This document shows, one piece after another, positions 3,387-35,084 of a stretch of DNA of 64,000 nucleotides. Origin of the DNA: Rebecca billardiae RCC1528 (Eukaryota > Protista > Haptophyta); contig OZ251234.1 of the NCBI GenBank assembly GCA_965240325.2, forward strand, positions 186,001 through 250,000. Reading direction: 5' to 3'. Every line of letters begins with the position of its first letter. Within the stretch, counting starts at the first letter, position 1. The position numbers and the translations under genes are program-made. The notes beneath the pieces are model-generated. The model worked only from the letters and a program-made list of their open reading frames with translations. It had not been told where the DNA came from and ran no database searches.

Positions 3387-3458
3387 GCTCACTTAGCTCA
3401 GAGGTAGAGCGCAGCACTAGTAATGCTGATGTCGGCGGTTCAACTCCGTCAGTGAGCT
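3387..3458 (+). tRNA. tRNA-Thr(AGT)
   Basis: Acceptor GCTCACT/AGTGAGC, D arm GCTCAGAGGTAGAGC, anticodon arm CAGCA-CT-AGT-AA-TGCTG (AGT at 3419-3421), T arm GGCGG-TTCAACT-CCGTC. Followed by CCA and TTTT runs (Pol III terminator-like). Confidence 0.93.
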
Positions 3459-4350
3459 CCACTTTTGTCTTTTCCGCCCCGATTAGTTTCCGAGCCCTTC
3501 ATCCCACCCTCTTGCCCTCACCCGCGCTCTGCACAAGCACCCGCATGCCTCGCCTGACTCGAAGCGACACGCACGTGGCCAATGAGTGGGAACGACTTGC
3601 TCGCGACTCGCGTCCATCACCGTGCCGTGAGCGGGGTCAGCCTCGCCGAGTGCGCCGCGGCTGTCACGCCGATTAATCACGGTCGCTGTGCGCAGCCCCG
3701 GCACACTCGGCGGCGCCGACCCGGTCACGTCCAGCTGCCGCTCGGACGCGACGACGGGGGCTCGGCGGCTCGGCGCGTACAGTACGCCGCACCCGGCGGC
3801 ACCAAGCCCACCCGAGCGCGATGGCGGCCGCACCGCTGCGCGCAGCTCAATCAAGGGAGCGGGGACGGGGCAGCCGCTCGACTGCGACCCGTCCAAGCTC
3901 GAGATCAAGCTGTACCCGCGCCTGTGCGTCTCGTACGCACGGCACCGCGGCGGCTTGGATGCGCTCTCAACTCCGACCCGAGGTTCGCCCGTCCGTGCCA
4001 TGTGCGCATTCCGGCGTGCCAGTGAGCTGGACGCAGTCTGCCCGCAGCATCGTCCGCTGGGCGGGGAGGATGGAGCACACAGTGACGAGGCTGGGCGCTG
4101 ACCCTGTCCTGTCGGTGTCGTGAGCGCCCGTCACCCTCCTCGTCAGCCGCATGCGCCCGCGGCACGGGCGCACGTTTGCGCGACGGCTCAATCCGCCTGA
4201 CTGCATCTTGCGGCCAGCCGCATGCGCAAGTGCGCAAGCGTGCGCACACACTCGACAGGGTTAGTTAGCAGCCATGCTTGGGCTGGCCAAGCTTGGGCTG
4301 GCGAGCGCCGGGGCGCGGCCCGCCGCCGGGAAGGGAGAGCACGCGGCAGG

Positions 4351-31836: not shown

Positions 31837-34800
31837 ATGTGGGCCTCCCCGATCGCCCTCGTCCTGCTCCTCTCGGCGCTCACTGCTCGCGCGCAGCTCG
31901 TCATCACCAGCGGGCCGTCGCGGCTTGTCGGGCGTGAGTTCATCGCGCCGCCATTCCGCTTCTCCCCGCACCCCTTCGACGTGGAGGCCGCGCCGGTGAT
32001 CCTGACCGAAGGCGCGGAGTGGTCGTACGCGTCGTGTCCGCCGGCGTACGTCGGGCCGCACGTGCTGCGCGGCGCCATCGTCATTCATGCGCAGCCAAAT
32101 TTTGTGCTGTGCTCACTCGAAGAGCACGCGCGGGGCGCGCGCGCGCTGAGCCGCGTCGCCGCGTGGGCGTTGTGGGTCGATGCAGCGGTGGTGTTTGAGA
32201 CGGAAGTCGGGTCTTTCAAGAACGTCTGGCTGCTGGGCGACGTGGGCGCGATCGCCTCTCCACCGGCAGTGGACCTGGGCGGCTGGCAGACTGCCCCACT
32301 CATCAAGGTCCTGCGCGAGGGCTCCGTCGTGAGCGCGAGCCTCAGCCCCTCCGTGTCGGAGTGGGATCGCATGCGTGCGTCGGGGTGGCTCTTCCTGTTC
32401 CAGATCAGCTTCGGGCTGCTCGCGCTGGGGCACGCCGAGTACGCGCTGGCGCGTCTCGCCGCCTTCGTGGGTGCGGACGGCGGTCCACGTCCGAGCATCG
32501 CACAGGTCATGCTCCTGCTCGAGGTGCTCGCCAACGCGATGCGAGCGGTGCAATCCGCCGACCCAAACTTTTCTCACGGCCTTTTCCCGATGCACGTCGT
32601 CCTCAGCTTCTTCTGGCTGCCCGTGGTGCTGGCGACGATCACGACGGCGCTGTTCCTCGTGCACTTTGCGCAGGCAGCCGCGCGCGGCATCGCTTCATTC
32701 CGGCTGACCGTGCCCGCGCTCCGCGTCGGGCTGTACGTCCTCTGCCTCACGATGGCGACCGTCTACCTCTGGTTTGAGATCAACCTGAGGCAGCCGTCGA
32801 GCATGAGCTTCTTCATCTTCGTCGCGAGCTCGCAGGGGTTCTACATCGGCTTCCCCGCGCTGCTCGTGGTCCTCAGCCTCGCGACGGACGCGCTGGTCCG
32901 GCGCCGGCTGCGAGACCTCCCGCTGCCCATGCTGCGCTCCCTCTCGGCGCGCGTGCGGCTCTCCGCGCTGCTCTCGGCCGCGCTCGTGGTGCTGGGGCCG
33001 TTCATGTACTGGAGCAAGAACGCGCCGTGGCGCATGCTCGGGATGGGCACGGCGTTCAACCTGCTGAGCCTCGCCGTCTCCAACGCGCAGATCGGCGCAT
33101 TCGCCCCCGCCGGCGTGCGCGTGCGCTACGGGCCGCTGTGCGCGCTCATCCTGCCGGCGTACAGCGCGCTCGAGACGAGGGCGCCCTCGCCGCGCGCGCA
33201 GGCGCGCTCCTTCCTCAAGCCGTCGGCCGTGACGCCAGCTGAGGAGCTGTCGAGCCCCGGCCAGGAGGCGGACGCGGAGGGTCCGACGGTGGGCGACGCG
33301 TTGCACCAGCACACGCACGCGAGCGAGGACGTGGACGACGAGCGGGTGCTCCTCGGCGTCTCGCTCCCGTACCTGCACGAGCTGGCGGAGGCGGAGGCGC
33401 TCACGGCCGAGCACTCCACCTTGCACGTCAGCGCGATCGTCCGCGAGCGCACGAGGGAGAGTGGCGTGTCGCTCGCGGAGCTCGAGTCCGCAGCAGAGAC
33501 GCAAGCGGCGGGCAGGCCTGCGGTGGCGCGGGCCACCCTGTTCGTCTCCCACGCGCAGAGCTGCTCCTTCCTCAAGCTCGTCGACGCGGTGCACGTCCAC
33601 TGCCGCACGCACGGCGTGGACATCCACACGGTGCACGTGTGGATCGACATCTTCTCGTGCGCGCGCGCGCACGCGCCCCGCACGCCGGCCGACACGCGCA
33701 CGCTCAGCCGCGCTGCCAGCCCGCGCCTTACGCGCAAGCCGCCCCGCGCCCCTCCCCTGCCCTCGCCGGCCCGCCACCCTCCCTCCGCGCCTGTGCTGCG
33801 CCGCGCAGCATCCGGCAGCACCACATCTCGACTGAGGTGAAGCGCATCGCCGCCATCGAGCGCGCGATCGGCCGCGTGGTCGTCGTCCTCGACCCGTGGC
33901 ACGACCCCGTCTGCCTGAAGCGGTGCTGGTGGTGCGCGCCCGCCTCTCGCGTCGCCGTGCGCCATCCGGCGCGCCGCTGTCAACTTGCGGGCCACGGCTC
34001 ACGCGCTTCTGCCGCGCGCCGTGCCGCCGCGCACTCGCGCGCTGCGCGCCGGGGCCACAGCCTCTTCGAGATCGCGCAGTGCTCCTTCGCCACGGAGGGC
34101 GCCGACCACTCGCATAGGACGGTGAAAGTGTCGCTCACGATGGCGGAGGAGGAGCGCGTCTCGCTCGTGCGAAGCCTCGAGCAGAACACGGGCACTCTCG
34201 AGCTCGCGCTCAAGCGCTTTGACGTGCGCACCGCCCAGGCGTCTGTCGAGAACGACCGGATCAGCATCCTGCAGCACATCCAGACGCGCGGCTGGCCACG
34301 CGTCGAGGGGCAGCCGTCGTGGTCCAAGCCCGCCCGCACTTCTCCCCAGCTCGTGCCGCGCCCGCGCGCCGAGCCCACCCTCGATCCCATGAACACCCCG
34401 GAGCGCGACGACCCGCCGCCGGACTTCGAGACGATGCGTGCGCACAGCCTGGTCGACGACACGCGGCCAGTGAGCGGCGTCGCGGCGGCTGCGTCAAGCA
34501 TGGACCCGCCGCTCGCCATGAACCACCGCCTCGAGCTGCTGCCCGGCGAAGAGAGCTTCAATCGCTTCAACGAGGTCGTGCGCGAGGAGCTCGCCAGGGC
34601 GGTGGCGGTCATGAGCTGGCAGCTGAGCCGCCCCACCCGCCATTTGCCCTCCGATGCGCGATCGCGCAAGAAGAAGCACCCGTCCGACGGCGCCGTCCGC
34701 CTGTCCCGCGGCTCCTCGGGCAGCTCGAGCCACACGTCGACGCCCGTGCTCATGGCGCGCAGCAGGCCCTCCAGTCACACGTCGACGCCTGCGCTTCAGC

Positions 34801-35084
34801 CGCGGTCGCGAAGCCGACCCTCCAGCCTCTCGACGACACCGGTGGTCAGGGCGCGCAGCAGGCCTGCTACGTTGAGGACCCTCGAGCTGGAGGAGGCCGC
34901 CACCGCCAACGCGAATGCGCAGCCTGGCACACGTCTCGCCTCGCGCACGTCCCCCCTTGTGCTGGCGCGAAGCAGCATCAGAGCCGGTGCAAGCAGCAGA
35001 TCTAATTCTGCTGACGAGGCACAGCTGATGCCTTCAGGCCCGATGGCGGCGGCTCTGACCGCGGCGGCGACTACGACGTCGTGA
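31837..35084 (+). CDS. Signal peptide + PA-like ectodomain + 7TM + cytoplasmic TIR/HET-like domain; exons 31837-33656, 33809-33931, 34061-35084
   Basis: Leader MWASPIALVLLLSALTARA and seven hydrophobic helices. The spliced sequence gives LFVSHAQSCSFLKLVDAV..VWIDIFS|IRQH..IGRVVVVLDPWHDPVCLKRCWC|LFEI..FDVRTAQASVENDRISIL. Confidence 0.8.

Follow-up and report, generated by a model that had tools for sequence, protein, structure and literature searches.

GPCR-bigrams, in which an N-terminal seven-transmembrane (7TM) region with the fold of a G-protein-coupled receptor (GPCR) shares one polypeptide with a C-terminal putative catalytic or signalling domain, are known in six types (GPCR-PIPK, -TKL, -INPP, -AC, -PDE and AP-GPCR) from oomycetes and other protists, including haptophytes (GPCR-PIPK), and a direct link from sensing to effector has been proposed for them (PMC5784254). 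Here we describe a gene at 31837-35084 on the forward strand of a 64,000-nt stretch of Rebecca billardiae RCC1528 (GCA_965240325.2, contig OZ251234.1, 186,001-250,000, forward strand; this whole stretch is called the window, and positions are counted in it), whose predicted product joins a PA-like ectodomain and a 7TM region to a cytoplasmic domain resembling both TIR and HET. As in the bigrams, the nearest concept in print, a GPCR-fold domain is paired with an accessory domain, here a putatively catalytic one, in an arrangement conserved across species; unlike them, the window family carries a TIR/HET-like domain, which none of the six types does, and it adds a PA-like ectodomain and a 7TM region that matches no GPCR family of Pfam. 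The best explanation overall, and in our view a probable one, is a real gene in which a PA/7TM part and a HET/TIR-like domain would form a one-component sensor-effector.

Fungal HET (PF06985), the cell-death module of heterokaryon incompatibility proteins, has non-fungal homologues that were noted in Haptophyceae in 2014 (PMC4986451). Two blocks of HET, W-I-D-x-x-[CS]-I-x-Q as well as R-x-W-[TC]-x-x-E, are recognisable in the cytoplasmic domain, HET is the best recurrent Pfam match of its family, and an Atlas HET cluster matches at a TM-score of 0.43. The domain differs in that its match stays below the HET gathering score, its first block is FVSHA rather than LSYxWG, and its family possesses an N-terminal helical extension and a terminal helix of its own; nor has HET been described on a 7TM receptor. 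With the canonical TIR NADases (SARM1; plant TNL TIRs such as RUN1/RPP1/RPS4; bacterial ThsB/SpbK), TIRs being its top structural matches (Z 5.0-5.7), the domain has in common the beta-alpha-beta order, F-x-S-H at beta-A, W-x-D at beta-B and the Glu of W-C-x-x-E at the start of alpha-C, whereas it lacks a significant TIR/TIR_2 sequence match, its Z-scores are modest, and it has other invariant residues and extra elements.

A cytoplasmic TIR-type domain with a conserved Glu, following an extracellular region and a transmembrane segment, is also found in Toll-like/IL-1 receptors and in the membrane-anchored TIR proteins of the haptophyte Gephyrocapsa huxleyi, which are induced during virus infection and have been proposed as receptor-like immune genes (PMC12489294). 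The G. huxleyi proteins were chosen by Pfam TIR models, the example having a single transmembrane helix, whereas the window protein combines a HET-like branch, a GPCR-fold 7TM region and a PA ectodomain. TeTIR (TEP1/NWD; bioRxiv 10.64898/2026.09.21.753143) is, like the present family, a divergent, extended TIR-like family seen only by profile and structure in which the catalytic Glu is retained, and differs in lying always upstream of a NACHT ATPase and in having an RWG loop in the BB region, neither of which the window family has. Transmembrane regions at the N-terminus of haptophyte TIR proteins have already been mentioned in general terms (PMC12489294); our literature searches found no 7TM-TIR or 7TM-HET protein, in agreement with an earlier note on this DNA, which knew of no such architecture as a characterised system in algae.

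A three-exon gene

The gene comprises three exons with a spliced product of 988 amino acids (aa), in a window of high GC content (0.59-0.84 in 2-kb steps). Its first open reading frame (ORF), 31837-33840 (667 aa), starts with MWASPIALVLLLSALTARA followed by QL, and holds C..LRGAIV..CSLEEHARGA..AAWAL, seven hydrophobic helices, FVSHA and VWIDIF. The unspliced frame ends at a TGA (33838-33840) shortly past VWIDIF, and the remainder lies in a second frame, down to 35084. We enumerated the GT/GC..AG pairs that preserve one open frame and chose the model that restores the family motifs, in which KRCWCLFE is readable only once two introns, both GTGCGC..CAG, are removed and codons S607 and C648 are split. 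The spliced protein aligns with KAG8458467.1 of Diacronema lutheri (P0002, 1115 aa) from the signal peptide to the C-terminal helix, with no gap at either junction. The parts of the model are as follows.

Exon 1, 31837..33656, + strand: aa 1-606 plus 2 nt of codon 607, from the ORF list, the splice model and the gapless alignment to P0002; contains the signal peptide, ectodomain, 7TM region, linker and, as far as VWIDIF, the first half of the HET/TIR-like domain.
Intron 1, 33657..33808, + strand: 152 nt, GTGCGC..CAG, within codon S607.
Exon 2, 33809..33931, + strand: aa 607-648 in part, IRQHHISTEVKRIAAIERAIGRVVVVLDPWHDPVCLKRCW, from the splice model and the P0002 alignment.
Intron 2, 33932..34060, + strand: 129 nt, GTGCGC..CAG, within codon C648.
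Exon 3, 34061..35084, + strand: aa 648-988, with the stop TGA at 35082-35084.

In the genomic contigs of D. lutheri WIDVFAIRQ is uninterrupted, with no intron at the site of the window's intron 1, and an intron GTGAGC..CAG (L001:4374-4481, L002:3260-3367) is offset from the window's intron 2 by one codon in the downstream direction. Searches for RNA runs of this genome listed none, and one low-share sequencing run, with a few 151-nt contigs, showed no joints. Judged by these comparisons with homologues, both introns are supported, and the locus is a real, intact three-exon gene. The earlier note had placed here a signal peptide, a PA-like ectodomain, seven transmembrane helices and a cytoplasmic TIR/HET-like domain, with a KRCWCLFE motif hidden by two introns; the ORF, the structural model and the motifs bear out the first part of this description, and the splice model and the gapless alignment the second.

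A word-indexed protein search with exon 1 returned a single match, P0001, a truncated ORF of the same D. lutheri protein, and the window protein itself was absent from the protein collections searched. There is no paralogue elsewhere within the 64-kb window and no notable tandem repeat within the gene.

The presence or absence of intron 1 and the shifted intron 2 amount to intron loss or gain, plus intron sliding, between two pavlovophyte-type genes. A second D. lutheri protein of 317 aa (P0003, KAG8458474.1, KFE25_004352) is nearly identical to the C-terminal third of P0002 (KFE25_004345), seven locus tags away, which points to a local duplication of part of the gene, or else to a gene model that was split. 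Over 37 nt, at 33880-33916 of the window, the gene is matched by an environmental contig of 192 nt that then runs straight into ...RAWCLLEIA with no intron; by its sequence this contig stems from another copy or another organism, as a related gene or transcript. The sole tRNA of the window is a tRNA-Thr (AGT) at 3387-3461.

An outward PA-like ectodomain on a GPCR fold

The AlphaFold2 (AF2) model of window residues 1-448 reached a mean predicted local distance difference test score (pLDDT) of 91.8 and a predicted TM-score (pTM) of 0.88, and divides as follows.

Signal peptide, 31837..31893, + strand: aa 1-19, MWASPIALVLLLSALTARA, from hydropathy, as the model's only part of low pLDDT, and from homologues that begin alike.
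PA-like alpha/beta ectodomain, 31894..32361, + strand: aa ~20-175, CPPAY..LRGAIV..CSLEEHARGA..AAWAL, from the AF2 model, Foldseek and Atlas.
Seven transmembrane helices of GPCR fold, 32383..33099, + strand: aa 183-421, from AF2 and VIA-align.
Helix 8, 33133..33177, + strand: aa 433-447, after the conserved AF.P.G.R...GPL, from AF2 and the consensus of alignment A2.

The transmembrane (TM) helices of the model span residues 183-213, 221-239, 252-283, 293-318, 325-357, 363-393 and 397-421. When compared with 48,161 chains by VIA-align, they matched GPCRs of classes A and C, as well as a designed GPCR-like fold, at Z 15-18 over 206-248 aligned residues, exceeding the level of about 13 that the tool quotes for unspecific helical matches; GABA-B, GPR156, GPR174, GPR6 and P2Y receptors were among these matches. 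The model thus has seven TM helices in a GPCR-like arrangement, an outward N-terminus and a helix 8. At the sequence level no Pfam family was matched at E<=10 by exon 1 or by P0002:190-480, the GPCR models 7tm_1, 7tm_2 and 7tm_3 included.

For the ectodomain, as part of the same model, Foldseek found PA-containing proteins, namely aminopeptidase 2ek8 (E 3.7e-3), the ectodomain of ZNRF3, and VSR1, and the Atlas search returned PF02225 clusters together with an unannotated eukaryotic cluster of the same PA+7TM shape (TM-score 0.69); no Pfam PA match (PF02225) was found at the sequence level in the ectodomain, the window exons or P0002. Among the 28 homologous N-terminal regions of alignment A2, which are 22-47% identical, the intramembrane charged residues E201 (TM1) and R236 (TM2) are conserved, as are the loops. 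Reading the sequence against the AF2 helices puts Arg-rich loops (RRRLRDLP, for example) on the side predicted to be cytoplasmic; this fits an N-out/C-in topology, and the C-terminal domain should therefore be cytoplasmic. On the evidence of the model, the protein is a seven-helix membrane protein of type I orientation, with its signal peptide and PA-like ectodomain directed outward.

A cytoplasmic domain between HET and TIR

The cytoplasmic region comprises about 340 residues. An exhaustive phmmer search with P0002:600-850 against 1.84 billion representatives returned 2228 proteins at E<=1e-3, 285 of them at E<=1e-10, and we aligned 93 domains (alignment A1; A3 is its trimmed core). The features of the region are:

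HET/TIR-like domain, 33334..34286, + strand: aa ~500-723, with both introns inside, from the family search, A1 and A3, the orthologue model and the fold searches.
Codon GAG of E651, 34068..34070, + strand: the Glu of WCLFE, positioned like the catalytic Glu of the TIR motif WCxxE.
Conserved terminal helix, 34551..34631, + strand: aa 812-838, ESFNRFNEVVREELARAVAVMSWQLSR, from the P0002 and family alignments.
Ser/Arg/Thr/Pro-rich tail, 34632..35081, + strand: aa 839-988, with no conservation in P0002 and probably disordered.

The domain has two parts: aa 500-560 form a helical extension at the N-terminus, and after it comes an alpha/beta core with the motifs FVSHA, VWIDIFSIRQ, VVVLDPW and KRCWCLFE. 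In the A1 consensus the helical extension reads LGVS..FLR.F...TT..V...T...S.AE, and the core A..FVSHA, then [YF].W.D.F..[RN]QH, then IG..VLVL.PW..P..L.R.WCL.E, followed by more helices; A, H, W.D, P, P, L and R.WC..E are near-invariant. The motif residues are at least 90% conserved over the 93 members, so that the pattern is not a matter of chance. Within WCxxE the Trp is found in 90 of the 93 members, the Cys in 83 and the Glu in 84 (among the 7TM-fused rows checked, in 14 of 17), which upholds the earlier note's expectation of a conserved Glu. The window protein retains every family-invariant residue: H572, W602, D604, Q610, R645, W647, C648 and E651. The terminal-helix motif aF..FN..VR.AL..AL..SW occurs family-wide, often at the very C-terminus, with an insert of variable length between it and the core, and is probably the integral last helix of the domain.

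HET domains are marked by three blocks, LSYxWG, WIDxxCIxQ and RGWTxQE. The second and third are recognisable in the window protein as VWIDIFSIRQ and KRCWCLFE, and FVSHA stands at the position of the first. No HET, TIR or TIR_2 match rose above its Pfam gathering score in the window exons or P0002, HET (PF06985) giving 14 bits (E 0.065) on the P0002 core versus a gathering score of 22.5 bits. Below threshold, matches to HET were seen in 14 of the 86 cores of the family (best E 4.5e-5) and matches to TIR_2 in five (best E 0.0097), the remaining Pfam families were matched by one or two of the 86 cores each, and a few family members matched PADLOC SAVED_TIR and ThsB. Sequence-profile searches of the PDB with A1 and A3 gave PdTIR (3h16) as the best TIR chain at a non-significant E of 0.8-0.9; it was through PdTIR that HHpred linked HET to TIR in the study of Dyrka et al. 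(PMC4986451). Because the gathering scores of both families are missed, the domain does not formally belong to PF06985 or to PF13676. Membership in TeTIR/DUF4062 was considered and rejected: no NACHT and no DUF4062 match occurs among the 93 members, there is no RWG loop, and the BB-region motif is W-x-D-x-F-x-x-[RN]-Q-H.

For the fold we used the D. lutheri orthologue P0002:600-850 to stand in for the window domain. Its AF2 model (pLDDT 91.6) shows a beta-alpha-beta core in which a helix begins right at the WCxxE motif. In an unbiased VIA search of the 48,161 chains just six reached Z>=5, all of them TIR domains (MyD88 5.6, SARM1 5.5, RPP1 5.3, Hydra TRR-2 5.3, SpbK 5.3 and IL-1RAcPb 5.2), and next below them came ThsB, SEFIR, nucleoside 2-deoxyribosyltransferases, LOG and DprA. 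A second VIA look gave 25 chains at Z>=5, of which all those listed contain a TIR domain; RUN1, MyD88, SARM1, RPPT and RPP1 were at the top (Z 5.5-5.7), with whole TIR domains aligned, e.g. RUN1 26-158. The orthologue model thus has the flavodoxin-like alpha/beta architecture and the strand and helix order of the TIR superfamily and lies nearest to solved TIRs, as the earlier note had anticipated. The note's comparison of the domain with TIR_2 and HET is backed by the motifs (for HET in part) and by a TIR-like fold and fails at both Pfam gathering scores, with Z-scores that are modest (5.0-5.7). We read the inner domain as a HET-like branch of the TIR (STIR) superfamily, representing a large, unnamed, eukaryote-wide family.

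Conservation of the fusion

The 150 best matches to the domain include at least 27 representative clusters that match window residues 1-480 too, and hence have the whole architecture. In a tree of domain cores that is otherwise poorly resolved, all 20 7TM-linked rows lie behind one branch with a support of 96 in the Shimodaira-Hasegawa-like approximate likelihood ratio test (SH-aLRT), in a clade that also holds short, possibly partial, proteins. By these comparisons the PA-7TM-HET/TIR arrangement is a conserved gene family and not a one-off fusion. Two members of one cluster, P0038 and P0154, are MMETSP transcripts, and therefore both halves lie on one mRNA in at least one organism; the earlier note's expectation that transcripts join the 7TM region to the domain thus holds for homologues, through these transcripts and the D. 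lutheri gene without intron 1. Elsewhere the domain is fused to TPR_10/TPR_12 repeats, methyltransferases, DUF285 or ankyrins, a variety that is, at the level of domain composition, the pattern of a portable effector module. The extent of the family came from the exhaustive search of representatives and not from the word-indexed searches, which gave 14 proteins, mostly TPR fusions, with profile A1, and P0001 and P0119 only with profile A2.

P0119 (640 aa, L005:10001-11923, + strand) is a full-length PA-7TM-HET/TIR-like homologue that retains RAWCLFE and has Gln in place of the beta-A His. It is encoded on a 131-kb metagenomic contig, with neighbours at L005:5273-9949 (- strand) and L008:3430-6968 (- strand), and adjoins an intron-free Rpb1. 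The contig also carries Rpb2, a 440-aa ResIII/SNF2 helicase, DUF5832, ClpP and mostly ORFans, at a coding density of 0.92 and a GC content of 0.52; neither a capsid nor a PolB gene turned up in the 42 kb of it that were read, and an IMG/VR pattern scan with P0119 gave no match. Judged by its gene content, the contig probably comes from a giant virus whose genome holds a copy of this family of receptors.

Proposed function and alternatives

As a one-component sensor-effector, the protein would constitute a new type of GPCR-bigram. Its PA/7TM part would sense a ligand or perturbation, upon which the cytoplasmic domains would change their conformation or oligomeric state, and this change would switch on an N-glycosidase-type active site around E651, with H572, W602/D604, R645 and W647. 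[quoted passage not shown] By analogy we infer a domain that uses E651 as the TIR NADases use their Glu, under the control of the PA/7TM part. An enzyme is favoured by TeTIR, an equally divergent TIR-like family with this Glu and a proven NADase (bioRxiv 10.64898/2026.09.21.753143), and the membrane-anchored TIR genes of G. huxleyi, which respond to virus, offer a precedent (PMC12489294).

Several points weigh against this proposal. No HET domain is known to act as an enzyme (PMC10197012, PMC12881547), and the protein has no significant Pfam, NCBI-type or PDB sequence match. The best Z of 5.7 lies below the level at which the tool's notes take a fold match to go beyond a common arrangement, and Foldseek E-values for the inner domain were 0.5 or worse. 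The folded structure is that of the D. lutheri orthologue, a proxy 64% identical in the core. That E651 is at the position of the TIR catalytic Glu is read from motif position and the order of secondary structure. Coupling to a G protein may also occur. The interpretation of the earlier note is thus partly supported; the NADase activity, ligand gating and G-protein independence that it entails are points that we infer only. Doubtful as a whole, and put forward tentatively, is the more far-reaching proposal that GPCR-fold receptors of haptophytes and other protists, acting independently of G proteins, directly gate a HET/TIR glycosidase of NAD(P)+ or nucleotides, that they serve as surface immune receptor-enzymes with copies captured by giant viruses, and that, through their near-invariant H, D, Q, R and E, they reveal the biochemical activity of the fungal HET domain.

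One could alternatively suppose that the cytoplasmic domain is a non-catalytic adaptor, which upon receptor clustering in the style of Toll-like/IL-1 receptors recruits soluble proteins with the same domain (e.g. the TPR-fused ones) by homotypic assembly. The adaptor TIRs MyD88, MAL, TRAM and TRIF are among the best structural matches, the domain is abundant in soluble TPR_10/TPR_12 proteins that are possible partners, and such a role has been proposed for HET by Dyrka et al. (PMC4986451). We nevertheless consider it unlikely: the near-invariant polar H, D, Q, R and E at the strand ends fit an active site better than a packing surface and look like an active site, which favours an enzyme, and the Glu of WCxxE is retained in 90% of the members.

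Even for an enzyme the substrate could be other than NAD+, the domain being a nucleotide/nucleoside N-glycosidase (as DNPH1/MilB, LOG or the nucleoside 2-deoxyribosyltransferases) or a nucleic-acid-directed 2',3'-cyclic nucleotide monophosphate (cNMP) synthetase. Nucleoside 2-deoxyribosyltransferases, LOG-type proteins, DprA and ThsB rank after the TIRs at Z 3.8-4.9, such families share a Glu-based mechanism (bioRxiv 10.64898/2026.09.21.753143), and the invariant H572, D604, Q610 and R645 differ from canonical TIR NADases. Set against this, TIR domains came first in every search and the context of WCxxE is that of TIR, and we give this possibility, too, a small chance.

A sensor role for the PA-7TM part has its own competitor, in which this part serves as an anchor or sorting module for an endomembrane compartment, where the domain would then be constitutively active. 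PA domains occur in vacuolar sorting receptors and PA-TM-RING ligases, VSR1 and ZNRF3 are among the ectodomain matches, and no GPCR Pfam family was matched; yet the GPCR-fold match at Z 15-18 spans all seven helices and helix 8, and the conservation of E201, R236 and the loops over the 28 sequences (22-47% identity) suggests more than an anchor, which makes this reading very unlikely. That the gene model is an artefact or a pseudogene whose exons are unjoined in vivo is barely credible: the introns were placed by inference, but removal of two introns, whose GTGCGC..CAG ends are identical, leaves 988 codons open, the alignment with the D. lutheri protein runs through both junctions without a gap, the D. 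lutheri gene lacks intron 1, and the family-invariant residues are intact.

Implications

For about 25 years it has remained an open question how HET domains kill fungal cells, and recent reviews still list their activity as not determined (PMC10197012, PMC12881547). The family described here lies between HET and TIR in its motifs, retains the TIR catalytic Glu and is wired to an obvious input module, and is thus a tractable protein for asking whether HET-like domains are enzymes. It would add a seventh, immune-type class to the GPCR-bigrams, and it would give marine algae a candidate surface receptor signalling through TIR-type chemistry. Since G. huxleyi TIR genes respond to virus, and TIR proteins are also encoded by haptophyte viruses (PMC12489294), such a receptor would be of relevance to virus-driven bloom collapse.

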